A DNA stretch of 64,000 bases, taken from positions 460,566 through 524,565 of IMG/VR virus record IMGVR_UViG_3300027749_002876. One strand, 5' to 3'. Positions 7,746-64,000 of this stretch are shown here, one piece after another. Each line of letters begins with the position of its first letter. The first letter of the stretch is position 1. A program made the translations under genes and the position numbers. The notes under the pieces were generated by a model. That model did not search any database. It was given only the letters and a program-made list of their open reading frames with translations, and was not told the DNA's origin.

Positions 7746-8446
7746 TGAATATAGGGTTTGATGTTATTAGCGACCTTAATCTGGCCGCTGAAGATAGCTT
7801 TGATTGGGAAGATAAGGCAACAAGCCTATACCTAATTATAGCAGGAAATATAAGCAATGATTTGCGAGTAATACATCAAACACTGGTTCATCTATCAAAA
7901 TTTTATCAGGGTATCTTTTATATGCCCGGATCGTTAGAACACGATTCAATGCACCTTATAAAAAACAGATACAGAGAAATAGTAGAACTCTGTAGACCAT
8001 TGAAAAAAGTAGCATGTCTATATAGATATGTAGTTATCATCAATGGTGTTGCCGTTCTAGGAGCAAATGGATGGTACGGTAATAAAAATGATTTGACCGA
8101 CTCTTTAGAGAAGCTACATCTACATTCACAGCAAGTAGAAGATGTAACTTATCTGGGTGCTAGTTTAGAAAGACTTCAACTACATCTGGACGTTAAGAAA
8201 ATAATTGTAGTTACACATAGTTCCCCTAGTCCCGAGTTGTTCTTTAAAGAAAATCCACCCGATCTTGATGTTCAAATTCCAATGATGCAAGTATTAGGAA
8301 ATGATTCAGAAAATAAAGTAGTTACTTGGGTTTATGGTAGCTACAACAAAAATGTTGAAACTACTATCAATAACATAAATTATGTAAACAATTCATGTTA
8401 TGATAAAAATCCTTATTGGCCTAAAAGAATTGATGTAGAAGTTTAA
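7745..8446 (+). CDS. Degenerate metallophosphoesterase-fold protein
   Basis: ISDLN / AGNIS / PGSLEH / VVTH correspond to MPP motifs with several metal ligands substituted. Confidence 0.65.
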   Translation: MNIGFDVISDLNLAAEDSFDWEDKATSLYLIIAGNISNDLRVIHQTLVHLSKFYQGIFYMPGSLEHDSMHLIKNRYREIVELCRPLKKVACLYRYVVIINGVAVLGANGWYGNKNDLTDSLEKLHLHSQQVEDVTYLGASLERLQLHLDVKKIIVVTHSSPSPELFFKENPPDLDVQIPMMQVLGNDSENKVVTWVYGSYNKNVETTINNINYVNNSCYDKNPYWPKRIDVEV

Positions 8447-8751
8447 TTAACATCAGCTTCAACTTTAACCTGTAGAGGGAATCCCTGACTACGTGCATCA
8501 AGTGTAACTTCAATCCCGCGCTGTTCTGCAATCTCATATGGTAATACAGCAACTATAGCACTACCCTGTTGATGAATATTTTCAGTTAGTGATGTAGCAG
8601 TATCTTGATTATAATTAAAATACCCGATTAAACTGTTAACCACAAAATTCATACTGGTAACTTCATCGTTCATATAAATGACTCTATAGAGTGGTGGTTC
8701 AGCAAGATTTATGTTTGGGCTGATTTTAATTTTAATATCTGTTTTGGACAT
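8443..8751 (-). CDS. clpS: Clp protease adaptor ClpS
   Basis: PPLYRVIYMNDEVTSMNFVV...IHQQGSAIVAVLPYEIAE...FPLQV. Confidence 0.9.
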   Translation of the reverse strand: MSKTDIKIKISPNINLAEPPLYRVIYMNDEVTSMNFVVNSLIGYFNYNQDTATSLTENIHQQGSAIVAVLPYEIAEQRGIEVTLDARSQGFPLQVKVEADVN

Positions 8752-29073: not shown

Positions 29074-30374
29074 TATCCCACCAAATCTTGTGTTTCTTGG
29101 GGTAATGCATCAAACAATGTATAATCATTATCATCGTAGTCTTCCAAGAATGTCCTAGATATATTCTTAAATGTACCACCGTGTTTGTAATATATTTGCA
29201 ATAACAGTGCTAAAGATGCATCAGCAGGTGTACTTGGTATCTTCTCATCTGGATTAGATTCCTTGTGCCAAGTTCTGAACGTGCCTTCAGCAAGTCGACG
29301 GAACTCTGCCGGAGAACCTGAAATGTTACGAATGATATTACCTAATGACATTACAAATTCTTTAATATCTTTTGATTTCAAAGACTTGTTACCTTTGATT
29401 TTATTACGCAAGTTAATCATAGGAATAACTTCAATAGAGTCAACACTCCGATAGTCCCAATTCCACTGATGAATTTGACACCACCAGTGTACTTCTTCGT
29501 CTGTCAAGTCTTTTAACAAGTCAACACGAACAAACGCACCCGGCAAATCTTTATTGTCATCATCTTCTTCATGTACCGGGACAATGCCATATGATTCCAT
29601 GATAATCTGTTTAGCAAATGCTTCTTCGTATAATTCCTTAGTAACAGTATTTGGATTGTCTTGTCGCTTACACAAAACATAGTTCTTCCATTTATCAAAG
29701 TAAACCAGTCTACGCTTGTCCTCGCCGTTAATACCCAAGAAGTGTTCACGTGCAAAAGTAAAATTGTGAAACTCAATCACTTGACATTTGATTTCAACAT
29801 CAAGCCAATTGTCAGCAGAAATACCATCATCAGCAAAGTGACCCCATTTAGACAATACACCATATGATACTGCGGTATGTTGACCGTCAATGATGTAGTA
29901 ATGATATTTGTTTTTAACTTTGATTTTAAGAATGTTAACGTATTGCACTTTCTTGGGATCAAAGTTCTCTACGATTTTCTTAATGTGACCATGAATTAAT
30001 GGACGTTGAACAGCAAGTGCGCTCAACAACTCACGCAATGGTATTGCTTCATAGTACGGTAAATTCTTGTAAGAAACTACCTTCTTACTTGTATTACGTT
30101 TTGCAATACCTGAAAGTTTATCATTCATAAATCCTTCAACCAATGCTTCAACAGTTTTAGCATCATGTTCATTGGGCTTCTTATCTAAAACGTTTACAGC
30201 ACGTTCAGATGGGCTAATTGTATGGATATCTGCATCATCAAATGCAAACAAATCAATCGGTGTAGTGAGAATAGCCTTCATAAGTGCCTTTTTTACTTTC
30301 TTTGCGCTAGGTTTTCTTACTGGATCTTCTTTCGAAAGTTTTGCAGATTGTGTTTTTTTAGCTATAGTTACCAT
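29073..30374 (-). CDS. ParB/Srx-like (DGQH) domain protein
   Basis: VQRPL...HIKKIVENFD...YIIDGQHT...FLGIN. Confidence 0.65.
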   Translation of the reverse strand: MVTIAKKTQSAKLSKEDPVRKPSAKKVKKALMKAILTTPIDLFAFDDADIHTISPSERAVNVLDKKPNEHDAKTVEALVEGFMNDKLSGIAKRNTSKKVVSYKNLPYYEAIPLRELLSALAVQRPLIHGHIKKIVENFDPKKVQYVNILKIKVKNKYHYYIIDGQHTAVSYGVLSKWGHFADDGISADNWLDVEIKCQVIEFHNFTFAREHFLGINGEDKRRLVYFDKWKNYVLCKRQDNPNTVTKELYEEAFAKQIIMESYGIVPVHEEDDDNKDLPGAFVRVDLLKDLTDEEVHWWCQIHQWNWDYRSVDSIEVIPMINLRNKIKGNKSLKSKDIKEFVMSLGNIIRNISGSPAEFRRLAEGTFRTWHKESNPDEKIPSTPADASLALLLQIYYKHGGTFKNISRTFLEDYDDNDYTLFDALPQETQDLVG

Positions 30375-36464: not shown

Positions 36465-36706
36465 CGTAACATAAAATGAATATAATCTTTCTCATCTGTG
36501 AATTTGAACGTAGTTTCAAATCCATCATCTTGTGTATCTTTATATTCATACGTCCACCTAGATTTTGTTCTACCAGGACCAAAAGTATCAACACACCAAT
36601 CTAATGGATTATTTTTATCTCTTATAGAACCGTCTGGTCCCATATAGTGTTTCCAATAATCCCAAGATAATAAAGCAATGTGTTGATATTTTTTCATGTG
36701 CCCCAC
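36455..36706 (-). CDS. Hypothetical protein
   Basis: WCVDTFG...FKFTDEKDYIHFMLRW. Confidence 0.55.
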   Translation of the reverse strand: MGHMKKYQHIALLSWDYWKHYMGPDGSIRDKNNPLDWCVDTFGPGRTKSRWTYEYKDTQDDGFETTFKFTDEKDYIHFMLRWR

Positions 36707-37542
36707 TCGTTTTTGAAAAGAGGTACTTGAAGTCTATCACTGTACCGATAACCACGATTCATTGCTTCAATAGCAACATTCTTAGCATTTAAGTTATACA
36801 ATGATTCTACACCACCGCAAGGCATGAAGTATACAGGGCCTCTGAATCCACCATTACGAAATTCTAGTACAGCTTTGTCTGCTTCAATTGCATCTTCACT
36901 AGTAGCAATAACAAACTTAAGATACACAAAGCCAATACTTTCATATTGACGAATGATGTTAGGACAAATTGCTTCACTCCACTTCTCGCCACTGATACTT
37001 AGTTTAGGACTAACACTAAATGTTAATGCATTCTTTTCTCTGTTAATCTTCCATTGTTGTAGATAGATTGATAGGTCTTGACTTAGTTCTTGTGTACCAT
37101 TAGTTTCAAAAGTAATCTCTTTGAGACCTCTCATTTTTTCGTTTGAAAGTAATTCTGGATATGCTCTTTGCCATCCAAGAAGAGGTTCACCACCAGTGAT
37201 AACAAGGTGCTCATCCATCCAGCGACCGTGAGGAAGGATAGTAAGAATAGAGTCAACAATAGAAACGGTACTGAGCATAGGACTAAGATGCTTAAATCTA
37301 GAGTCCCACGAGGCGTAGGAATCGCAACCTGTACTGACAAGCGGTAAGGATTTATAATCTGTATAATCTTGTGCTTTAATCGCAATAACATCTCTTTCAC
37401 TACTCAATTCTCCTTTATTCATGCCGAAGCCACCACACGTAAAATTGCATCCATATGTTCTAAGGAAAATACTTGGTACTCCGATATATCGGCCTTCTCC
37501 TTGTATACTATAAAAAAGTTCACTTACTTTTATGCTTGTCAT
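36694..37542 (-). CDS. queE: 7-carboxy-7-deazaguanine synthase (radical SAM)
   Basis: ELFYSIQGEG, FLRTYGCNFTC...GCDS, ITGGEP, FETNGT, SPKL. Confidence 0.92.
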   Translation of the reverse strand: MTSIKVSELFYSIQGEGRYIGVPSIFLRTYGCNFTCGGFGMNKGELSSERDVIAIKAQDYTDYKSLPLVSTGCDSYASWDSRFKHLSPMLSTVSIVDSILTILPHGRWMDEHLVITGGEPLLGWQRAYPELLSNEKMRGLKEITFETNGTQELSQDLSIYLQQWKINREKNALTFSVSPKLSISGEKWSEAICPNIIRQYESIGFVYLKFVIATSEDAIEADKAVLEFRNGGFRGPVYFMPCGGVESLYNLNAKNVAIEAMNRGYRYSDRLQVPLFKNEWGT

Positions 37543-38083
37543 TAATATGTTCTTTCAAATCATTCATTGATATATAGAGTTTTTCACAAATGAAGCCCTC
37601 TTTCTTTCGTTTACTATCGGATAAGCACCATCCCCTAATAGTTGTCTCATGTACATCGTAATATTTAGCCGCATGCCCCATTGAAGGGAATATACCATCA
37701 GGCGTAGTCACCATCATTTTCCAATTAGGTCTATCATTGTGAATTATACGTTCAATTGAATCTAAAACTGCAGGTACCTTATAGTCTCTTTTTAAGTATT
37801 CTACTGCATTTAACAGATTTTGTAAATCATCTTGGAACTTCCCGAGAGCCATATTACAGTTGGTGCAAAGTAAACCTCTTACTTTTTTTGTAACATGACA
37901 ATGATCCACTGCTAAATCCCTATTACATATATCAAGTTTATTACAAATCGCACAGCCATGATTTTGTTCTACCAACATTGCTTCGTACTGGTCGGCATTA
38001 ATTCCAAAATCTTTCATCAAATCTGACCTTTTTCGGCGTTTGTTAGTTCGTTCTTTACTATTGAGTGTTTTTTGCTTAATCAT
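37520..38083 (-). CDS. Endonuclease VII-like HNH homing endonuclease
   Basis: CAIC...LAVDHCH...VRGLLCTNCNMALG; C-terminal NUMOD/HTH-like segment; TATAAATA and AAGGAG upstream. Confidence 0.85.
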   Translation of the reverse strand: MIKQKTLNSKERTNKRRKRSDLMKDFGINADQYEAMLVEQNHGCAICNKLDICNRDLAVDHCHVTKKVRGLLCTNCNMALGKFQDDLQNLLNAVEYLKRDYKVPAVLDSIERIIHNDRPNWKMMVTTPDGIFPSMGHAAKYYDVHETTIRGWCLSDSKRKKEGFICEKLYISMNDLKEHINDKHKSK

Positions 38084-38402: not shown

Positions 38403-38594
38403 TTACCAATGATGTAAAGTGTTTGCTATGATGAAACAACATGTTATCACATGTAGCACCACCCAGAAAGTTTTTAGGAACAATGCGATTTTTGCTTCAC
38501 CTAATGTAAGAATAGGTACATCAGGCCTGTCATCATCGGTATTACCCATTAGATGACCGGTTGCTCTTGCCCATATTTTTTCTAAGCTATTCAT
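38403..38594 (-). CDS. Small membrane protein
   Basis: KIWARATG...C-terminal TM ending HHW. Confidence 0.6.
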   Translation of the reverse strand: MNSLEKIWARATGHLMGNTDDDRPDVPILTLGEAKIALFLKTFWVVLHVITCCFIIANTLHHW

Positions 38595-39010
38595 TAAGCT
38601 ACCTCGTCTTTATTGTTGTTAGGATATTTTGCACTAGTATATCTAATAACTAATACGCTTATTGCGATAACAAATGTAGAGCCGGCTACAGCTAACATTT
38701 CAATAACATTGATTGGCTGATGACTCATTATATCTACCATATGCCGTGTCAGTGCTGTTATTGCAATGTATAGCAGGAACCTGACAGGCATATGATTGGT
38801 CTTGAAATAAATGCCCACCATTGCACCTATTTCCAAATAGATAAACATTAATAACAAGTCACCGACTGTTGCGTGATGTTTTTGAAACATTTCAGCGAAG
38901 GTCCAACCGGCAGCCCATACTGTTGCGGCACCGATACCAAACAATGCAAGCCTATGAAATATGTCTACTAAGGTATGTCCTACCTTATCTACCATTTCTG
39001 TTTTCAACAT
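38594..39010 (-). CDS. psiE: Phosphate-starvation-inducible PsiE-like membrane protein
   Basis: DLLLMFIYLEIGAMVGIYFKTNHMPVRFLLYIAITALTR. Confidence 0.85.
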   Translation of the reverse strand: MLKTEMVDKVGHTLVDIFHRLALFGIGAATVWAAGWTFAEMFQKHHATVGDLLLMFIYLEIGAMVGIYFKTNHMPVRFLLYIAITALTRHMVDIMSHQPINVIEMLAVAGSTFVIAISVLVIRYTSAKYPNNNKDEVA

Positions 39011-39492
39011 TATTCAAACTCTCTATCTTCACGATGACCGCCACGTCCTGCCATGTTGCTATCAGTCTCACGTACCTCTACTCTACAGCACCATACACGT
39101 TTAGCTTCTTCGCTACCACAGTTGGGTAAGAAGATTGTGTTGATGTATTCATATAAAAAGTCAGCAATACCTTCACAACCAGTGCGTTCTACTTCTGTGA
39201 TCTTTGCTAGTTTCAATCTACCTAGTTCTAATAGATGTTCACGCATTGGGTCATCTTGTGCGACTAATAATGTATGGTCAAACCATTCTTCTAGTTTATC
39301 TTTGAGTGGGCGTAGTCCACCAAAATCAGTTACCCAGTTACGGGCATCCAATGTATCAGCTTCAAACTCAAAGTGAAAACTCATAGCATAGCCATGAATT
39401 AAATTACAATGACTGTCAGCACGCCATTGACGATATGCGACAGGACCTATTTGTCTGTATGTCTTTGTTGAAAAGAATTTTTTGTTTGCCAT
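39010..39492 (-). CDS. queD: 6-carboxytetrahydropterin synthase (QueD/PTPS family)
   Basis: SHCNLIHGY, DFGGL, FDHT, GCE, VEVRET. Confidence 0.88.
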   Translation of the reverse strand: MANKKFFSTKTYRQIGPVAYRQWRADSHCNLIHGYAMSFHFEFEADTLDARNWVTDFGGLRPLKDKLEEWFDHTLLVAQDDPMREHLLELGRLKLAKITEVERTGCEGIADFLYEYINTIFLPNCGSEEAKRVWCCRVEVRETDSNMAGRGGHREDREFE

Positions 39493-39573
39493 GTTTTCTC
39501 CTATGTTGTATTATAGCATAGGCGGCAGAGTTTGTAAAGCGGGAGTGACGCCAAGACCGCTACTTTTATTTAA
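39490..39573 (-). promoter_or_regulatory. Structured queD leader: preQ1-I-like pseudoknot, SD-sequestering hairpin and internal sigma70 promoter
   Basis: AGCGG-UCUUGGCGUCACUC-CCGCU-UUACAAA-CUCUGCCGCC; CCUAUG/CAUAGG over SD; TTTACA-17-TATAAT at 39510-39538. Confidence 0.55.
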
Positions 39574-40272
39574 CAAAAAACCCATAACCTCTTCTTTATT
39601 AAGAATTAAATTAAATGGATCAGTTTTAATAGATTTTTCTCCTAAATATTTGAATTTTGTATTGTAGATTTTTTCCATGTCTGAATAGATAGATTCATAT
39701 TTTACTTTTTTATATTCAATATTGTGTAATATTATAGACAAATTCTTTTCCCATAATAGGTGACTATTATAAATTTCAGTTAATCCATTATTCAGACGAT
39801 TAATATCAATTGTTGCAGGTTCATTGATTTCACTATTGATTCCAAATACGTTTTTTAGGTTGTTAGCATATGAGCGGGCAATCATAAAACTTAACAATTG
39901 TTCTTTAATATCTCTTGTCAATGTGATAAATTCAAAACCTATATTTTTTAACTCTATTATTATTTTAGATAATGTTTCCTTATCATAATGATCCATCAAA
40001 AAAATTCTTACAGTTAATGATTGGTTTATATTTGTATTTTTTAATAAATTAAGTCGTTCTTCAAATCCTTCAAATATTTTAAAGTTTGAAGGAATGCTAG
40101 CAAAATTCTTTAATCTTATATTATTGTCATCATCAGTCACATATTCACTGCGATTCCAATTTTCAAAATACTCGCCCAATTGAAAGCTTGATTTTATTTC
40201 TCCGGATAATTTTTCACACAATTGACTACCTGTTCTGGGTAAACAAATAATACATGTTCTGTTGCCGTTCAT
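39511..40272 (-). CDS. Sulfotransferase-like (Stf0/P-loop) protein
   Basis: LPRTGSQ (PAPS-binding-like), LGEYF, LTRDIKEQLLS, VKYE. Confidence 0.6.
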   Translation of the reverse strand: MNGNRTCIICLPRTGSQLCEKLSGEIKSSFQLGEYFENWNRSEYVTDDDNNIRLKNFASIPSNFKIFEGFEERLNLLKNTNINQSLTVRIFLMDHYDKETLSKIIIELKNIGFEFITLTRDIKEQLLSFMIARSYANNLKNVFGINSEINEPATIDINRLNNGLTEIYNSHLLWEKNLSIILHNIEYKKVKYESIYSDMEKIYNTKFKYLGEKSIKTDPFNLILNKEEVMGFLLNKSSGLGVTPALQTLPPML

Positions 40273-41063
40273 TTTAATCCTAAATTTTTCCTAATTTTAG
40301 TTGCACTGATATTATGTGTAGCATCATCAAATATTTCTTGCTCAATCTTATAACCAACATCACGACCGTATGTAATATTCACAATGTTTGGTACAATTTG
40401 AATTTCGTATTGACCTTGATATAACATATCTAAGTCACGTTTAATAAAACTTTTAACTTGTTCGATGGCAAATGGATTACTTCCTTGCCAACCTTGACAG
40501 TCACGTATTTGTATAACTACTTGCCCAGTCTTAGCAATAGCCCGTTCAAACAACTTACGATGTCCTTCATGCCATGGTTGCCAACGACCTAGCATCTGTA
40601 CTGTTTCTTTCTGCCAATCAAACACTGGTCTGCGTCTATTATCTAATATGTGTGCGGCAATAAACTCACCCCACTTTTCACCTTTTTGTTCAGTAATTCT
40701 AAAGTCATATACTTCTGGTGGGATAAATGCTTTGTTAGTATCGTCAAATCTACCTTTATCAATAGTATCAACCCATACAGTCCAATCTGCTTTAAAGTTA
40801 TTACGCATTTCAACTAATGGTGCAACAAAGTCACATATAACATAATCACATTCAATCATATTATCTGCTAGTTCACGCATACGTAAACTTTGACGAACAC
40901 GACCTTCTGTGCTAAAGTCCCAATCGTTATACTTTTTTCGTACATCGTCAGCATTTAGCCAACCTACTTTTTTCTTATCCGCTTGTAGGTGCTCTACAAT
41001 ATGTTGTGCTATATAAGTTTTACCTGCGCCAGGCAGGCCCATTACTAATATTCTTTTAGGCAT
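40269..41063 (-). CDS. Adenylylsulfate-kinase-like domain fused to HxGH nucleotidyltransferase domain
   Basis: GLPGAGKT, LNADDVR, FSTEGR; GRWQPWHEGH, ISATKIR. Confidence 0.8.
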   Translation of the reverse strand: MPKRILVMGLPGAGKTYIAQHIVEHLQADKKKVGWLNADDVRKKYNDWDFSTEGRVRQSLRMRELADNMIECDYVICDFVAPLVEMRNNFKADWTVWVDTIDKGRFDDTNKAFIPPEVYDFRITEQKGEKWGEFIAAHILDNRRRPVFDWQKETVQMLGRWQPWHEGHRKLFERAIAKTGQVVIQIRDCQGWQGSNPFAIEQVKSFIKRDLDMLYQGQYEIQIVPNIVNITYGRDVGYKIEQEIFDDATHNISATKIRKNLGLK

Positions 41064-41523: not shown

Positions 41524-41765
41524 TTTGAAAGTGTTCTCCACATTTTAGTTTGTTCATGTTCTTTTAAGAATTCATCCTCACCCGTAAATGTAGGTGCATC
41601 ATTCATAATCTCATCCAATAACCATTTCAATTTATGTAAATCTTTTTTGATTTCAAATGTAGTAAATCCATCGTTATACGGACTGTGAAGTTCTACACCT
41701 GCAATGTAGATTTGATGATGTACACTATTATAATCCATTGGTTTTTTAAATCCCATTATTTGCAA
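41520..41765 (-). CDS. Hypothetical protein
   Basis: [13 protein letters not shown] motif. Confidence 0.6.
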
Positions 41766-42436
41766 CCTTTATTTGCAATCTGCAAAAACTCTTGTCTTGC
41801 GGCTGGATCTGTTTTGAATCCACCACCTAGACGGCAGGTAGTTGTACTTGAACCAGTATCTTCTACACCTCGGGCCGCAACACAATAATGCCTGGCATCA
41901 ATCATTACAGCTACATCTTCTGTTTCTAGTATATAACATAGTGAATGAAAAATTTGTTCAGTTAATCGTTCTTGTATTTGCGGGCGCTTACTGAAATATT
42001 CTACTATACGGTTGATTTTACTAAGGCCTAGTACCTTATCCTTTGGTACATAAGCAACGGTAGCCAAACCCGCAATAGTAATAAAATGATGTTCACATGA
42101 ACTTTGTACATTGACATTGCGTTCAACAACCATTTCATTATATTTCATTTTATTTTCTACAGTAGTACATTTTGGAAATGCTTCATAATCTAGTCCGTAG
42201 AAAATTTCATTTACATACATCTTAGCAACACGCTTGGGTGTCTCAATTAGACTATCATCAGATAAATCTAAACCAAGATATTGCATAATAATAGTGAAGT
42301 GTTCTTCAATACGATCAATCTTATCTTTTCTGTCTAAGTTGTTTGGCAATGTAGGAGTCTCAACTCCCATTTTGACTAAGTGCTGATGCACTTGTTGACC
42401 CAACTCTGGATCTGTTTTTGTTTTATTATAACTCAT
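41756..42436 (-). CDS. folE: GTP cyclohydrolase I
   Basis: [39 protein letters not shown]; start revised to MSYNK. Confidence 0.95.
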
Positions 42437-42502
42437 AGATAACCTTCCTTTGTGATGGTTTTGTTTTGATATTGTGTTACCATTGTGTAACACAAGTATT
42501 TA

Positions 42503-59450: not shown

Positions 59451-61457
59451 TTAATATGTTGGTAATGCCGCTGTGGGTGGCGTGAATGTGGTGGTGTATC
59501 TGGCCAAGCCTTTTGTGATGCGGAGATCGTCTATATAACCATTTAAATCATATACGTTATCTATAGTTTTACCTACTCTCAATGGACCTGTTGGCATCAT
59601 ACTGGTTGAGTTTGCACCGCTATAGCCCTGTACTCCATCATTGAATATTCGTAATGTTCCACTTGCTCTACAAATTGCAATATGAGTCCACGTGGCCGAA
59701 GCAACAGCAATTGAGCTGGCAATATCGCTTGCAATTAAAATATAAGGTTGATTGCTGGAATTTAACAGCACTGCCCAAGGCGATGCAGTTCCTGAACTTC
59801 TTGTGTCAAGTATTGTTTGATATGCTGATCCACCGGCTCTATAAAGCCAAAATTCTATTGTAAAATCTCCAGTACCAAATTGATTGGCCACAGAGAAAGG
59901 TGCAGTTAGATAATCACCTGTACCATCGAACGCCATACTTGATCCGCCAAATTTTGATTGTGCAGTAGAGATTTTGGCATCACCCACTGTTTCCAAGTTG
60001 TTCATCATTGCATTGTCAATGATACCAGCGTTGGTGTAGTTGAGTAGTAGGCTTGTGTTTGTGATTGCTGTTAGTGGTGATGTGGGTACGGTTACAGTGG
60101 TAACACCCGAACCTTTAACTATGCGAAGGTCTTCTATGTATGCTTTTGCATAAACAGGAGCACCGTCATTTGATGCACCAATCAACAAGGTGCCACTTGT
60201 ATCGATATTTGCAGTAACAGAAGTTGGTGTCATTGCTGATACACCATTGATAAATTGATACAATGTTCCGCTAACTCGGCTAGTAACTACATGAGTCCAG
60301 GTATTCAATGGAAAAGTTGAAGTGGTAATATAATTTGTGCCGGTATAAAAATTAAGTTTTCCGGCAGTATCCGTGTACCAAACCCAGGGAGCAACAGATC
60401 CAGTAGTAGTTCGTTTATCAAGTATTCCACTATTACCAGAAAAACTAGTTATATAAATCCACGCTTCTATTGTAAAATCACCAGTACCTAAATTTAGGGC
60501 AGCATTATTGGCCACACTCAAATAATCCCCTGAGCCGTCAAAGTATCCTGACCCACCGATTGTGCTGGCACTGTATGCGGCTGTGGGTTCGAATGGTGAG
60601 AATCGTTGTACAGTTGGTGAACCTGTTAGTGTAATGGCAAAAGTGTTTGCGGAGTTGTCAATGAATCTATTGCTTTGACAGGTTAATAATCTTGTACCCG
60701 ATATAGCAGTCAATGGAGTTGTGCTTGGAGTAAATGCTGATGAATAAACAACTGTATTTGTCAACCGGTAATTAGAAATGTAGCCAGAAAAATATGTTGG
60801 TTGATTGCCTTCAACACCAATATTGTCATTTTGGTTAAGACCAGCGGCTGCTACACCAGTATAAGTTGCAGAAGTTGTACTTAATACCCCGTTGACATAA
60901 ATTTTAATTGTAGTGCCATTAATTGTAGCCGCAATATGAGTCCATGTATTAAGTGGAACATCACTTGTAGACGCAGAATCTACATTTTTATATCCCCCGT
61001 CATACCAGTAAAATCTAACAGCTCCATTACGAATACCAAAATTAAAGTATGTTGCACCTTTAGCCTGAACGGGAGAAAACATCCAAGCAGATGCACCTGT
61101 GTTATATGCTGTTGGATACACCCATGCTTCAAATGTGGCAGTTATACCAGTAGCTGAACCTGTACAAAGAAAGTTTGATGCAGTTGTTCCTGCGGTTAAA
61201 TAACTGCTACCTGTAAAGAAATTACTCCAATTACTTCCATAAGGACTAAACGTGCCTTGTGTTGTATTACCGTTGCGAGTTATTGCAAAGTTGTTTGTAC
61301 TACCATCTAAAAATGTATTGTTCTGTGCAAGATTTGTACCATTCCCTGGTAACAACAATGAGTTGTACATAAAGTATGGGTCGTTTGCGGCAGCTCCCGA
61401 AGGTGCAAACGTCAATCCACCACTAAATGTTATACCTCCGGTTACTGTTACTGTCAT
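59451..61457 (-). CDS. Virion fibre/adhesin with three LamG (ConA-like) domains
   Basis: Three FTIE/TFEAW...WTH.A...Y(F)xNG...GYI.(D/N).R.T units; SGYFDGSGDYL. Confidence 0.85.
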   Translation of the reverse strand: MTVTVTGGITFSGGLTFAPSGAAANDPYFMYNSLLLPGNGTNLAQNNTFLDGSTNNFAITRNGNTTQGTFSPYGSNWSNFFTGSSYLTAGTTASNFLCTGSATGITATFEAWVYPTAYNTGASAWMFSPVQAKGATYFNFGIRNGAVRFYWYDGGYKNVDSASTSDVPLNTWTHIAATINGTTIKIYVNGVLSTTSATYTGVAAAGLNQNDNIGVEGNQPTYFSGYISNYRLTNTVVYSSAFTPSTTPLTAISGTRLLTCQSNRFIDNSANTFAITLTGSPTVQRFSPFEPTAAYSASTIGGSGYFDGSGDYLSVANNAALNLGTGDFTIEAWIYITSFSGNSGILDKRTTTGSVAPWVWYTDTAGKLNFYTGTNYITTSTFPLNTWTHVVTSRVSGTLYQFINGVSAMTPTSVTANIDTSGTLLIGASNDGAPVYAKAYIEDLRIVKGSGVTTVTVPTSPLTAITNTSLLLNYTNAGIIDNAMMNNLETVGDAKISTAQSKFGGSSMAFDGTGDYLTAPFSVANQFGTGDFTIEFWLYRAGGSAYQTILDTRSSGTASPWAVLLNSSNQPYILIASDIASSIAVASATWTHIAICRASGTLRIFNDGVQGYSGANSTSMMPTGPLRVGKTIDNVYDLNGYIDDLRITKGLARYTTTFTPPTAALPTY

Positions 61458-61466
61458 AATATTCCT

Positions 61467-61904
61467 TTATTCACGGTTCTTTAATATACTACGCAACATC
61501 CAACTATGTTTTTCGTGTGCGTCTAGTCGTTCAGCAATGAAGTTTGCGATACCTTGTTTGTTCTCATCTTCAGCAGAAACAAAACAACCATTTAGTAAAT
61601 CAATCATCTTTTCATTATCAGATAATAACTCAGCAAACATTAAGTGTGGACGAGGAACTTTAAGTTGGTCCTCAATGATAGTTAGTTCTGCATAACGTGA
61701 CAAACTACCCGGTGCATAGCTATCTAGTGTGCGAATATACTCTCCAATCGGGTCAATGGAATTATACACCTCAGCATAAAAATCACCTAAAAACTTGTGG
61801 TATTGCGGGAAGTTATCACCCTCTATATTAAAATGAAAACCATGTATTTTTACATAAAATGCAAAAGTACTACCTAACAATACCTTAAGATTATCTACTA
61901 ACAT
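61467..61904 (-). CDS. dps: Dps/ferritin-like DNA protection protein
   Basis: HGFHFNIEGDNFPQYH, IDPIGEYIR, HEKHSWMLRS. Confidence 0.88.
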   Translation of the reverse strand: MLVDNLKVLLGSTFAFYVKIHGFHFNIEGDNFPQYHKFLGDFYAEVYNSIDPIGEYIRTLDSYAPGSLSRYAELTIIEDQLKVPRPHLMFAELLSDNEKMIDLLNGCFVSAEDENKQGIANFIAERLDAHEKHSWMLRSILKNRE

Positions 61905-61942
61905 TTGAAATTCCTTATATAACTATATTTATCTATTTTAGC

Positions 61943-62011
61943 ATAAATAAAAGTGAGGATCGCGGTACTGGAAATACCCACCCTCTCTAATGCTAAAAAG
62001 GAGCAATCAGC
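61943..62011 (+). promoter_or_regulatory. Late-promoter motif and structured leader of HNH gene
   Basis: ATAAATA, then GAGG..GGUA-CUGGAAA-UACC..CCUC hairpin and UGCU-AAAAAGG-AGCA over the SD. Confidence 0.5.
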
Positions 62012-62608
62012 TTGACTATTTATTCAACTTCGGACCATCGTAAGATTTACGAAACACACATTGGTCCAATTCCAAAAGACATAGAAGGTCGTAGTTATGA
62101 AATTCATCATATTGACGGAAATCACAATAACAATGAATTGTCAAATTTATTGTGTGTTTCTATTAGAGAACACTATGAAATACATAAATCTCAGGGAGAC
62201 CTTAAGGCTTGTTTAATTATGTCTCAAAGAATGGGTGTTTCCCCTGAAGAAAAATCACACCTAGCAAAATTATCAAATACAGGAAAAAATAATCCAATGT
62301 ATGGTACTATTTGGATTAACGACGGAATTATTAATAAGAAAATTCGCGGAGATATACCCGAAGGCTGGGCACGAGGCAGATTAATATCACACGAACACGC
62401 TTCAAAATTTACAAAACGATCCAAAGTTGGTACTAATAACACTAGATTTAATAAGACAATTTATTGTTTTGAGAATATTAAAACACTAGAACAAATTCAT
62501 AGTACATCATATGAGTTTGCTATTAAGTATGGAGTTAGCACTGTTGGAATAAGAGGTCTCATTCAAAAAAACAAGACCTCTTATAAGGGTTGGCGAATGG
62601 TTTTTTGA
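62012..62608 (+). CDS. Free-standing HNH homing endonuclease
   Basis: YEIHHIDGNHNNN...NL...EH...H; NUMOD-like GKNNPMYG, WINDG, KGW; opposite strand to neighbours. Confidence 0.88.
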   Translation: MTIYSTSDHRKIYETHIGPIPKDIEGRSYEIHHIDGNHNNNELSNLLCVSIREHYEIHKSQGDLKACLIMSQRMGVSPEEKSHLAKLSNTGKNNPMYGTIWINDGIINKKIRGDIPEGWARGRLISHEHASKFTKRSKVGTNNTRFNKTIYCFENIKTLEQIHSTSYEFAIKYGVSTVGIRGLIQKNKTSYKGWRMVF

Positions 62609-64000
62609 TTATTCATTTCTAGGCAATACGAATACTCTACCGCCTGCTAAAATAGCCATATAGTTTCCTATGCCACGCTCACCCATTACAGCTTGGGGGA
62701 TAACAATTTGTTGCCCGCCGCGTGGTCTGATGCCACCAGGTTCTAACATAATCATTTTATATTCTTGTCCATCAACTGTAACAGTACCTGCTTGTCTATC
62801 AGCACGTTCTGCACGAACTAATCCTTGACCGGGTATAGTTGCAGTAGATGGTGTTGCCGCCGGAGCTGGATCAGTTGCTTGTTGTGTAGCAGTGGGTTTC
62901 ATTCCACCTACTTGATTACCGTCAGCATCATATGTTACACGACCGTGTGCGGCACCTGTACCTAATGCCATTGCACCAGTCAATGCGGCGGCACCTAATT
63001 TTTGTTTCCAACCTTCGTCTACATTTTCATTAGACTTTTTCTTTGTATCAACATTGATAGCTTTACCACTACGATCTGGATTAGGATCTTCTCTACGCTT
63101 ACGTTGAGCGGCACTTGCACGACCCTTCTTACCTAAACTATGCGCTTTACTTTGAGGCAAGCATTTTGGTTTACCTTCTCCTGGTTCTCTAGCACACGGA
63201 CCTTTAATCTTTCCTTTAGTATCCATGCGAACCCATTTTTCTTTGTTGAACCAATCGTGCAAACTTTCATCTGCTTGTTCAATACCTTCTAGTATAGAAC
63301 TTTCATTCTTCTTTCCACCGTTGCCCCAGTTACTTGCACCTTTTTTACGACATTTAACTAATGCCCCAGACGCATAAGCACTTGGCCATACTTTATAACG
63401 ACTCTTTACTTTATAGTAGCAAGCATCTTTCTTTTCGTTCATTAGTTCTTCGCTAACCATTTCACCACCACAGTGTGGGCAACTATGTTGTGCTTCCGCC
63501 ACACCTTGCTGACCCGGCACTGTATCAACAATGTTTATCATTTTATCAGGAACTATTTGTACAGGAACATTGCCGTTGTATCCGGCGGCTTGGTATGCGA
63601 TAAATCTATGATTCCCATCTATTACAAAAAGTTTACCTTTGTTATTCCAAACAACTAACGGACCTAATTTCCCATTTTGTTTTAGTTGTGGTAAAAGATT
63701 GTTATTGACCCATTGAGCAACCTTTGGATCCTTCATTGACTTACCATTTTCCCACATTTGTAATTTATTAAAAGGTGCTTCAGTTACTGGCAAACTTTTC
63801 TTTATCCTGTCATCAACAGTAGCACCTTTATAAGCAGGATTTGTGTAGATAGTTACTAGTTGCTGTTCCAAGGCTTCCGCCACACCTTGCTGTCCTAGTA
63901 ATGATTGCACCCAAGGAATGAACGTGTTAATGATCCAGTCATTGTGCTGTTTGCTTTTGTCCAGTGTGCTGGAATCTGCCACACGACCGTTTATGGTCAC
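62609..64000 (-). CDS. Modular polyprotein-like late protein (5' end beyond window) with ParB-like domain
   Basis: QQGVAE x2; VIDGNHR ParB motif; CPHC; DACYYKVKSRYKVWPSAYASG and WFNKEKWV...KCLP modules; internal signal-peptide-like segment. Confidence 0.75.
   Translation of the reverse strand: MTINGRVADSSTLDKSKQHNDWIINTFIPWVQSLLGQQGVAEALEQQLVTIYTNPAYKGATVDDRIKKSLPVTEAPFNKLQMWENGKSMKDPKVAQWVNNNLLPQLKQNGKLGPLVVWNNKGKLFVIDGNHRFIAYQAAGYNGNVPVQIVPDKMINIVDTVPGQQGVAEAQHSCPHCGGEMVSEELMNEKKDACYYKVKSRYKVWPSAYASGALVKCRKKGASNWGNGGKKNESSILEGIEQADESLHDWFNKEKWVRMDTKGKIKGPCAREPGEGKPKCLPQSKAHSLGKKGRASAAQRKRREDPNPDRSGKAINVDTKKKSNENVDEGWKQKLGAAALTGAMALGTGAAHGRVTYDADGNQVGGMKPTATQQATDPAPAATPSTATIPGQGLVRAERADRQAGTVTVDGQEYKMIMLEPGGIRPRGGQQIVIPQAVMGERGIGNYMAILAGGRVFVLPRNE
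63492..63892. repeat. Exact 20-bp direct repeat flanking ParB-like domain
   Basis: gcttccgccacaccttgctg at 63492-63511 and 63873-63892 (encodes QQGVAE on minus). Confidence 0.9.

Follow-up and report, generated by a model that had tools for sequence, protein, structure and literature searches.

The closest known system to the element described here is the preQ1-I riboswitch (Rfam RF00522), which lies upstream of genes of the 7-deazaguanine pathway. Class I preQ1 aptamers are H-type pseudoknots of about 35-50 nt, with a 5-bp P1 closed by a conserved G-C pair that forms the floor of the pocket (G5-C18), a conserved U directly after the P1 5' strand (U6) that reads the ligand's N9, and an A-rich L3 that lies in the P1 minor groove, whose last adenine (A30) reads the ligand and is followed directly by the P2 3' strand. 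P2 is short (3-4 steps) and contains Shine-Dalgarno (SD) bases or the terminator switch, and the ligand turns expression OFF. A specificity cytosine sits immediately 5' of the P1 3' strand, preceded by U in type I (two-ligand) aptamers or by A in types II and III (PMC11625349). Other RNAs offer partial parallels. In translational ON riboswitches, such as the add adenine riboswitch of Vibrio vulnificus, a switching strand pairs either within the ligand-stabilized aptamer or with the SD/AUG region, and folding of the aptamer frees the ribosome site. The THF-II (folE motif) and THF-I riboswitches are OFF switches in bacteria that act in cis on the same upstream pathway (GTP cyclohydrolase I and pterins), and their ligands carry a guanine-like 2-amino-4-oxo face. 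In phage T4, the 5' pseudoknot of the gene 32 mRNA is an autogenous translational operator that nucleates cooperative protein binding on an unstructured A/U-rich region.

Here we examined a candidate element in a 64,000-nt stretch of viral DNA (the window; positions 460,566 to 524,565 of IMG/VR record IMGVR_UViG_3300027749_002876), where a preliminary description made from the sequence alone had proposed a preQ1-I-like pseudoknot in front of a phage queD gene. Every sequence element listed in that description is present on the minus strand, and the observation is confirmed. A 5-bp stem encloses a loop, UCUUGGCGUCACUC, that starts with UC and ends with C; an A-rich tail follows, and the sequence after it can pair with the loop and also begins a hairpin that covers the SD. 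One correction is needed, as P2 is longer than the four pairs first noted and continues beyond a U/C mismatch into two inner pairs.

Features of the queD leader and its surroundings (positions in the window)
Feature	Position	Strand	Sequence or remark
TAAATA box	39567-39572 (T-TAAATA, 39573-39567)	-	5 nt 5' of P1; candidate phage promoter element that would put the transcript start at the foot of the aptamer
H-type pseudoknot	39561-39521	-	P1, L1, P2, L2 and L3
P1 5' strand	39557-39561	-	AGCGG; pairs with 39542-39538
L1	39553-39556	-	UCUU
P2 5' strand	39546-39552	-	GGCG-U-CA (GGCG, 39552-39549)
L2	39543-39545	-	CUC; invariant C39543 immediately 5' of the P1 3' strand
P1 3' strand	39538-39542	-	CCGCU
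L3	39528-39537	-	UUACAAACUC; 10 nt, A-rich, would cross the P1 minor groove
P2 3' strand	39521-39527	-	UG-C-CGCC; shared between P2 and the SD/AUG-sequestering helix
P2 inner pairs	C39547-G39526, A39546-U39527	-	beyond the U39548/C39525 mismatch
SD-sequestering hairpin	39500-39522	-	CCUAUG (39522-39517) / CAUAGG (39505-39500), 11-nt loop
Shine-Dalgarno	39498-39502	-	AGGAG
Start-codon segment	39487-39491	-	UGGCA (last two bases of the start codon plus GCA); predicted to pair with UGCCG 39527-39523 in the OFF fold
Embedded sigma-70-like promoter	39510-39538	-	-35 TTTACA 39538-39533, 17-nt spacer, TG 39518-39517, -10 TATAAT 39515-39510
QueD-like gene	39010-39492	-	160 aa; ATG at 39492
QueE-like gene	36694-37542		phrog_2076
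FolE	41756-42493

The downstream gene encodes a QueD-like T-fold enzyme of the PTPS family with a CxxxHGY signature. It scores 58 bits with Pfam PF01242 (cut-off 22), but only 35.5 bits with the NCBIfam QueD equivalog (cut-off 89). It is followed without gaps by a PsiE-like gene and, further on, by the QueE-like gene. Searches of the record for DpdA/TGT, QueC, an Rpb2-like RNA polymerase and sigma-70 region 2 returned nothing above cut-off.

Taken alone, the sequence proves nothing, as the nested minimum free energy (MFE) of the leader is no better than that of shuffles (z = -0.15). Comparison, however, settles the question. A degenerate pattern of the core matches once in the window against 0.00 expected, and more than 300 instances were found in viral and metagenome contigs, from hundreds of uncultured freshwater phages. 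In 125 distinct cores aligned by MAFFT without reference to structure, 94.0% of cells are paired, against a shuffled mean of 78.3% (0 of 500 shuffles reach the observed value) and 30-50% in slid controls, and 197 cells have changes on both sides, against 65 in shuffles. Many of these sequences are closely related, so cell counts overstate the number of independent events. In P1, 99.2% of cells are paired; pair 2 is GC:101, CG:17, UA:4 and pair 3 is CG:113, AU:6, UA:6, whereas the two closing G-C pairs are invariant (the floor pair is GC in 125 of 125, and is also invariant in leaders selected through QueD alone). Each outer pair of P2 shows 4-6 standard pair types (for example AU:34, UA:28, GC:20, CG:18), although P2 has 10% unpaired cells, with recurrent A/C mismatches and register shifts. 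The innermost pair of P2 is A-U in essentially all TCTGC hits and G-C in 59 of 60 hits of a TCCGC scan, and has the top mutual information.

The unpaired positions are also constrained. The first three bases of L1 are Y-C-U in all relatives, followed by a variable spacer of 0-9 nt; the first is U in 100 and C in 68 of 168 distinct sequences, and while the C and U were fixed by the search pattern, they are also invariant in the 40 leaders collected through QueD alone. L2 is 2-3 nt long and ends in the invariant C, which sits where the ligand-specifying cytosine of preQ1-I sits; a scan of IMG/VR that demanded a non-C here found only one non-homologous sequence, present in two contigs. The base before it is U in 84% and C in 16%. 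The U/C mismatch inside P2 is likewise invariant. L3 has the consensus NNA-N-A-W-A-Y-U-C, and its positions 4 and 6 covary with P1 pair 3: with C-G the loop reads A[C/U]AAA (118 of 122), and with A-U or U-A it reads AAAUA (16 of 17). This is the signature expected of L3-P1 base triples, but shared ancestry is not excluded.

The element is tied to queD. All 80 loci selected through QueD carry the motif (77 complete and adjacent, one cut by the contig end, and two with the motif one gene upstream). Of the 196 instances after the pattern scan, 186 lie directly upstream of PTPS-family genes with 31-100% identity to that of the window, and a further one precedes a divergent PTPS-family protein; 102 of 108 assessable metagenome hits do the same, for about 95% overall. 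The genes upstream of the motif differ between loci. Coding constraint as the cause of conservation was rejected, since the upstream ORF overlaps the aptamer only in this window, and in relatives other genes end before it.

The element is also essentially phage-only. In bacterial and archaeal genomes (596 Gbp) the pattern gave 12 hits, of which ten fail P1/P2 pairing, have no queD and are chance, and two are real and sit on contigs of Bacteroidota MAGs that we take to be phage contigs. BLAST of the 1.5-kb region and of the leader against 50,697 cultured-phage records returned only a QueD coding match in Sinorhizobium phage Phosso, plus chance matches; a hit in Listeria phage LM 4-11-1 has no hairpin and no queD. 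The closest cultured QueD-like genes (Acidovorax ACP17, Xanthomonas X1 and BUDD) have no intergenic room upstream and gave no hit with our own model, R1. That the closest cultured phages with this QueD type lack the element counts against a riboswitch reading.

No Rfam family matches. There was no PreQ1 hit at E <= 10 on the 501-nt or the 81-nt stretch around the element, none at gathering threshold in the window or in 13 diverse loci, and none on a leader designated L077; weak hits to snoRNA and miRNA models and to TEG147 are chance. A search with RF00522 over the whole 524-kb record lists ten hits of 10.6-14.9 bits, none at the element, which scores under about 10 bits against a gathering score of 39. 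The element shares with preQ1-I the H-type knot, the 5-bp P1 with its G-C floor, the cytosine before the P1 3' strand preceded mostly by U as in type I, the A-rich L3, a conserved C in the 3' tail, the que-gene context and a predicted action through SD accessibility. It differs in that L1 starts with Y-C-U instead of U(U), the U6 equivalent is C in 40% of sequences, L3 is 10 nt and ends in invariant Y-U-C followed by the U-G of inner P2 rather than in A, P2 is 6 bp around a mismatch instead of 3-4 bp, the SD lies about 20-30 nt downstream (19 nt 3' of P2 in the window) instead of inside P2, and the predicted polarity is ON. The three-element logic resembles that of the add riboswitch, but there is no sequence relation and the add aptamer is a three-way junction of the purine class and not a pseudoknot. 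The THF riboswitches have different folds. Like the T4 gene 32 element, this is an H-type pseudoknot at the (predicted) 5' end of a phage mRNA that would govern translation of the downstream gene, but here a defined alternative helix and a riboswitch-like invariant core are present, and no protein partner is known.

The P2 3' strand has the potential to control the ribosome site (RBS), as it also forms the 5' strand of the SD-sequestering helix. This hairpin is in the MFE fold of the window and is 99.7% paired in 125 leaders of one lineage (type a), but is nearly invariant there, with only one compensatory pair; its loop varies from 4 to 12 nt. Other lineages use different SD-pairing platforms, so that the aptamer is conserved while the expression platforms differ, which is the usual anatomy of a riboswitch. 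In the window, the opening energy of the RBS is 7.4 kcal/mol in a free fold and 3.9 kcal/mol with the pseudoknot formed. In 140 unique leaders it is 7.75 kcal/mol free, 4.77 with P1 and P2 formed and 8.33 with P1 only, and is lowered by more than 1 kcal/mol in 125 of 140; the probability that the SD is unpaired rises from 0.31 to 0.69. Folding of the knot is thus predicted to open the ribosome site, although this polarity, like the burial of the start codon, rests on nearest-neighbor energies that cannot score the pseudoknot itself, and ON control of a biosynthetic gene is unusual.

Promoter-like boxes recur in relatives. Among 195 unique relatives, 168 have a box 5' of P1: TAAATA or TAAGTA ends 5-11 nt 5' of P1 in most of the 137 that carry it, and 31 others have a TATAAT-like box at that place. 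TAAATA also lies upstream of 17 of 66 ORFs in the window, against about 3.5% expected. The embedded sigma-70-like promoter matches the consensus at 11 of 12 positions plus the TG extension, and 144 of 195 relatives keep a 5/6 or better TAnnnT box at 16-18 nt, with variants keeping T1, A2 and T6. A start about 7 nt downstream would give a short leader without the aptamer and without the 5' arm of the hairpin. Yet 41 of 195 have no such box and keep the aptamer. Both the embedded boxes and the upstream TAAATA box are conserved but dispensable for the aptamer. Assembled metatranscriptome contigs from 4 runs contain relatives' aptamers, but these contigs run on upstream of the aptamer, may include DNA and give no transcript ends.

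Based upon these data, we slightly favor the view that the element is the aptamer and expression platform of a previously undescribed, phage-specific cis-regulatory RNA of the riboswitch type. In this view, when the pseudoknot forms, most likely stabilized by a small ligand, the helix that buries the SD, and in this window the start codon, cannot form, the ribosome site opens and QueD is translated, probably followed by the genes coupled behind it. The likely ligand has a guanine-like face read by the invariant C, candidates being a pterin, 7-deazapurine or purine of the FolE-QueD-QueE pathway. The proposed pocket comprises the G-C floor, C39543 and an A-U ceiling. The fold (by covariation), its linkage to queD, its essential restriction to phages and the overlap of P2 with the SD-sequestering helix are established by our analysis, whereas ligand binding, ligand identity, ON polarity in vivo and the transcript starts (a TAAATA-driven, aptamer-bearing mRNA, expected to start near 39563, and an internal sigma-70-like promoter that would bypass control, with an expected start near 39504-39502) are inferred. 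The interpretation in the preliminary description, a phage riboswitch variant possibly sensing CDG/preQ0 or guanine and coupling precursor supply to DNA modification, is therefore partly supported: the conserved queD-leader pseudoknot, its resemblance to class I preQ1 aptamers, the competing SD helix and the presence of both promoter-like boxes hold, and the outcome that was to have refuted it, an absence of covariation with conservation limited to the -35/-10 boxes, was not observed. Membership in preQ1-I as modeled by Rfam is not supported, and the proposed ligands and use of the boxes as promoters remain inference only.

Other explanations could account for parts of these data. The pseudoknot could be an operator for a phage or host protein that sets queD translation, QueD itself being the only gene that always accompanies it. 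The fold and its linkage to one gene family fit autogenous control, as in the T4 gene 32 mRNA or ribosomal-protein leaders, as well as they fit a riboswitch, and nothing here discriminates the kind of ligand. We nevertheless consider this unlikely, because the aptamer core stays nearly constant while the adjacent QueD-like protein diverges to 31% identity, and because a compact knot of about 45 nt with many invariant unpaired bases and a cytosine at the preQ1-I specificity position is typical of small-molecule pockets. Somewhat less likely still is a ligand-independent leader in which the pseudoknot always forms and serves as a 5' stabilizer, translation enhancer or thermosensor, with the alternative SD helix only a folding intermediate. 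P2 is GC-rich and could be stable on its own, the element sits at the predicted 5' end of the mRNA, and no ligand is known. However, the nearest-neighbor duplex energy of the OFF helix in the window (-10.3 kcal/mol) exceeds that of P2 (-6.1), so P2 needs extra stabilization, and invariance of the L1, L2 and L3 bases and of the P2 mismatch is not needed for a mere stabilizer.

An ordinary, divergent preQ1-I riboswitch that binds preQ1 or preQ0 and represses queD by feedback would explain the shared architecture and gene context, but is doubtful given the lack of an RF00522 hit, the differences at U6, L3 and P2, and the predicted ON polarity, as no known preQ1 switch is ON. Least likely is a purely DNA-level signal, in which a promoter is preceded by a weak terminator or operator palindrome and the RNA structure is incidental. 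The embedded promoter is well matched and varies in the TAnnnT pattern typical of -10 boxes, but P2 covaries between the hairpin loop and the promoter spacer with all four Watson-Crick pair types and G-U pairs, which no DNA-binding or promoter model predicts. This reading is already contradicted by the covariation, by the variants that keep the aptamer without a -10 box, and, as regards a terminator, by the absence of a U-run after the hairpin.

A more far-reaching possibility, which we hold only tentatively, is that this is a new riboswitch class found only in phages, a preQ1-I-like pseudoknot rebuilt with a long P2 and a new pocket into a translational ON switch. It would sense a guanine-faced intermediate of the FolE-QueD-QueE route (H2NTP or another pterin, CDG, preQ0, 7-deazaguanine or guanine), and the phage would thereby gate synthesis of its DNA-hypermodification precursor, while a host-type promoter embedded inside the aptamer would give an unregulated early transcript. 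Such an overlap of an aptamer with a promoter would be an unusual piece of regulatory architecture.

Riboswitch classes confined to viruses are very rare, and none is known to control the 7-deazaguanine pathway, which phages use to hypermodify their DNA against restriction and CRISPR; the papers on phage 7-deazaguanine DNA modification returned by a full-text literature search do not use the word riboswitch. If a ligand is confirmed, this RNA would provide a compact natural ON switch for synthetic biology, about 75 nt long including its platform, and a new small aptamer fold related to preQ1-I, with a different pocket and the opposite polarity, that is useful for understanding how tiny pseudoknots change specificity. 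It would also give a direct handle on which intermediate limits phage DNA modification.

The genes in this part of the window run on the minus strand, and the leader in question lies directly in front of a gene for a 160-aa protein of the PTPS/QueD family (Pfam PF01242, 58 bits). The preliminary description had listed a late-type box, a 5-bp stem whose loop can pair with a downstream tail, a competing hairpin over the Shine-Dalgarno sequence (SD) and an internal promoter. When the minus strand was read, each of these elements was found to be present, and their positions are collected in the table below together with those of neighboring genes. On its own, however, this sequence is not special: the minimum free energy of its nested fold equals that of shuffled sequences (z = -0.15).

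Coordinates in the window of the queD leader elements and of neighboring genes
Feature	Coordinates	Strand	Sequence or remark
TAAATA box	39572-39567	-	TAAATA
P1, 5' strand	39561-39557	-	AGCGG
Loop of P1		-	UCUUGGCGUCACUC
P2, 5' strand	39552-39549, 39547-39546	-	inner pairs C39547-G39526 and A39546-U39527, beyond a U39548/C39525 mismatch
P1, 3' strand	39542-39538	-	CCGCU
Tail		-	UUACAAACUC
P2, 3' strand	39527-39521	-	UGCCGCC; paired at 39527-39526 and 39524-39521
SD hairpin, 5' arm	39522-39517	-	CCUAUG
SD hairpin, 3' arm	39505-39500	-	CAUAGG; the hairpin covers the SD
SD	39502-39498	-	AGGAG
Start codon	39492	-	ATG
-35 box	39538-39533	-	TTTACA; 17-nt spacer to the -10 box
-10 box	39515-39510	-	TGcTATAAT; with the -35 box sigma-70-like, the pair matching at 11 of 12 positions
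Start-stop mini-ORF	39511-39519	-	AUG-CUA-UAA
Unknown ORF, 253 aa	39511-40272	-	upstream ORF; reads through the aptamer
QueD-like gene, 160 aa	39492-39010	-	PTPS/QueD family
PsiE-family membrane protein	38594-39010	-	starts at the queD stop codon, with overlapping ATG and stop
Endonuclease VII-family gene	37520-38083	-	between queD and queE, overlapping the queE start
QueE-like gene	36694-37542		radical-SAM protein
FolE	41756-42493

To ask whether the fold is conserved, we first searched IMG/VR with the QueD protein, a selection that is blind to the RNA. This returned 80 loci, and all 80 carry the same motif upstream of queD, although the gene upstream of the motif differs from locus to locus. 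In 77 of these the motif is complete and adjacent to queD, in one it is cut by a contig end, and in two a cupin gene lies in between. We then wrote a degenerate pattern of the core that leaves P1 pairs 1-3 and the outer P2 pairs free. This pattern matches once in the window, against 0.00 expected, and gave at least 120 matches in IMG/VR and again at least 120 in JGI/ENA metagenomes. On a plain MAFFT alignment of 125 distinct cores, scored for P1 and for P2 including its inner pairs, 94.0% of cells are paired, whereas the shuffled mean is 78.3% (0 of 500 shuffles reach the observed value) and controls in which the partner was slid by 1-3 columns give 30-50%. Changes on both sides occur in 197 cells, against 65 in shuffles. 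The outermost-but-one to innermost outer P2 pairs each show four to six pair types (for example AU 34, UA 28, GC 20, CG 18), P1 pair 2 switches among G-C, C-G and U-A, and P1 pair 3 among C-G, A-U and U-A.

P2 extends beyond the helix that had been recognized at first, because two further pairs follow the U/C mismatch. We tested the last of these, A39546-U39527, directly. When the 3' partner is fixed as C (...TCCGC), 59 of 60 IMG/VR hits have G at the 5' partner and one has A; when it is U, essentially all have A. In addition, positions 4 and 6 of L3 change together with P1 pair 3. With C-G at this pair the loop reads A[C/U]AAA, and with A-U or U-A it reads AAAUA in 16 of 17. This is what an A-rich loop lying in the P1 minor groove would show, although shared ancestry is not excluded.

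The motif is closely linked to one gene family. Of the 196 instances available after the first pattern scan, 186 lie directly upstream of a PTPS-family gene, whose protein identity to that of the window ranges from 100% down to about 31%. All 186 of these QueD-like proteins carry CxxxHGY in place of the zinc-binding CxxxHGH of canonical QueD. This is the QueD type of cultured 7-deazaguanine phages such as Pseudomonas phage Iggy (48% identity). The window protein scores far below the NCBI QueD equivalog cut-off (35.5 against 89 bits) and has no PDB relative by sequence. One further instance precedes a divergent PTPS-family protein, and the remaining exceptions are a cupin followed by queD, a methyltransferase-like gene, and unknown or endonuclease-like ORFs. 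In two contigs (L196, at 7779-8624, and L188), the aptamer and its SD hairpin are followed not by queD but by a TTG-started 282-aa ORF with no family match, possibly a mobile endonuclease inserted behind the leader. In metagenomes, 102 of the 108 hits with enough flanking sequence are followed by queD. In contrast, in 596 Gbp of bacterial and archaeal genomes (185,579 species genomes) the pattern occurs only 12 times, and ten of these fail the pairings and lack queD. The two genuine copies are on contigs binned into Bacteroidota MAGs, a 183-kb contig of a Haliscomenobacter MAG (L211) and an 8-kb contig of a Chitinophagales MAG (L218), which may be mis-binned phage contigs or a hint to the host. 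Thus, the element is in practice phage-only.

A covariance model built from the alignment of 125 cores finds two copies in the 524-kb record: the element described here (62 bits) and another at 29503-29551 (68.5 bits). The second copy is again directly before a queD copy, but there the upstream neighbor, abutting the aptamer, is the cytidylyltransferase gene (L221:1007-1498, the locus of the second copy). In the window (39511-41063, minus strand), two extra genes sit between them: a 264-aa APS-kinase/NMN-adenylyltransferase-like fusion and the 253-aa unknown ORF. The kinase-like gene has a copy at 108503-109294 of the record (82% identity). The 253-aa ORF has no Pfam, PHROG or NCBIfam match, and it reads through the whole aptamer and stops inside the TATAAT box. 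In the nearest relatives (loci L001 and L005) the homologous ORF stops at a TGA before the aptamer, so the last ~20 codons here are probably an accidental extension. The second copy lies in a diverged, inverted duplicate of the window region and may belong to a related strain joined in by the assembler. The window as a whole (1-64000), the last 64 kb of the 524,565-bp record, is a diverged (75-91% identity), inverted copy of the first ~76 kb of the same record (13610-75635), while its last 4 kb (59912-64000) is 99.6% identical, in direct orientation, to 172924-177012. Related contigs are about 350 kb. This looks like a chimeric or concatenated assembly of two related phages rather than one genome.

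We next asked whether the element belongs to a described RNA family. No Rfam 15 family matches the window, the leader or 13 diverse relatives, either at gathering score or at E <= 10, and RF00522 (preQ1-I, gathering score 39 bits) does not reach about 10 bits at the element. We compared the element with the defining features of class I preQ1 aptamers as summarized in PMC11625349. It shares with them the H-type knot, a 5-bp P1 with an invariant closing G-C, an invariant C immediately 5' of the P1 3' strand and preceded by U as in type I (no real non-C variant exists in IMG/VR), an A-rich L3, a conserved C in the 3' tail, and the que-gene context. It differs in that the base after P1 (the U6 equivalent) is U or C, L3 has 10 nt and ends in YUC rather than A, P2 is 6 bp with an internal mismatch rather than 3-4 steps, and the SD is outside the aptamer. 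Thus, we regard it as preQ1-I-like in architecture but not as a member of that family. In the literature searched in full text on phage 7-deazaguanine modification, no phage paper mentioned a riboswitch, and searches on preQ1 riboswitches, queD and riboswitch candidates found no description of this motif.

Promoter-like boxes lie both upstream of the aptamer and within it. Among 195 unique relatives, TAAATA or TAAGTA lies just upstream of P1 in 137, ending 5-11 nt from it in most, and in 31 more a TATAAT-like box takes that place. In the window, TAAATA is enriched within 70 nt upstream of long ORFs, where it occurs at 17 of 66 in sense orientation, against about 3.5% expected and against 5 in antisense orientation. 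This is consistent with a phage promoter element, which would start the mRNA at the foot of the aptamer; no sigma-70 region 2 or Rpb2-like polymerase gene was detected in the record. The embedded -35/-10 pair is kept in 144 of the 195 relatives, with variation only at the tolerant -10 positions, but 41 of 195 lack it and still keep the aptamer. The conservation of the aptamer therefore cannot be explained by the promoter. A start about 7 nt after the -10 box would give a short leader with a free SD, in line with the initial proposal of a transcript that bypasses the structure, which is plausible but unproven. Metatranscriptome contigs from four runs include relatives' aptamers and run on upstream of them, but give no transcript ends. 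The TGnTATAAT box also coincides with the start-stop mini-ORF, which lies in the conserved loop of the SD hairpin and has no SD of its own.

The P2 3' strand overlaps the 5' strand of the helix that buries the SD, and in this window it is also predicted to pair with UGGCA of the start region. Other lineages keep the aptamer but use different SD-pairing platforms, which likewise overlap the P2 3' strand. To examine what this overlap could mean for translation, we folded 139-140 distinct leaders. The predicted probability that the SD is unpaired rises from 0.31 to 0.69 when the P2 strands are taken up by the knot, and stays at 0.31 in a control that blocks only the 5' strand. Similarly, the predicted energy to open the ribosome binding site (-14 to +5) falls from 7.75 to 4.77 kcal/mol, whereas it is 8.33 with P1 alone enforced; it is lowered by more than 1 kcal/mol in 125 of 140 leaders, and in the window it goes from 7.4 to 3.9. 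The duplex energy of the OFF helix (-10.3 kcal/mol) exceeds that of P2 (-6.1), and P2 would therefore need extra stabilization.

Other explanations were weighed. A protein-binding operator, for example one under autogenous control by QueD, fits both the fold and the linkage and cannot be excluded, although the RNA stays constant while QueD diverges to 31% identity, which argues mildly against it. A ligand-independent stabilizing leader does not explain the invariant unpaired bases or the weaker P2, and a canonical OFF member of preQ1-I fails several of the features that define that class. A purely DNA-level reading, as a promoter or terminator, is contradicted by the covariation in P2.

Taken together, the structure first noticed in the leader is confirmed, and comparison strengthens the case for it. 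Its initial interpretation is supported in part: it is right in kind, as a phage riboswitch-like variant of the preQ1-I layout. While the fold and its linkage to queD rest on the comparative data, the family assignment, the polarity, and the binding and identity of a ligand stay at the level of inference. The record encodes FolE, this QueD-like enzyme and the QueE-like protein, but no QueC or TGT/DpdA was detected by Pfam, and a divergent DpdA may have been missed; Cellulophaga phage phiST, which carries 7-deazaguanine DNA, has the same gene set (10.1101/2023.04.13.536721). The best reading is a translational ON switch of the QueD-like gene, in which a ligand would stabilize the pseudoknot. 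The invariant C at the preQ1-I specificity position points to a ligand with a guanine-like face, and FolE lies upstream of the switch and would be outside its control. In this view, the candidates for the signal that the phage would sense are therefore one of substrate type (H2NTP or a pterin), or a purine or 7-deazapurine.
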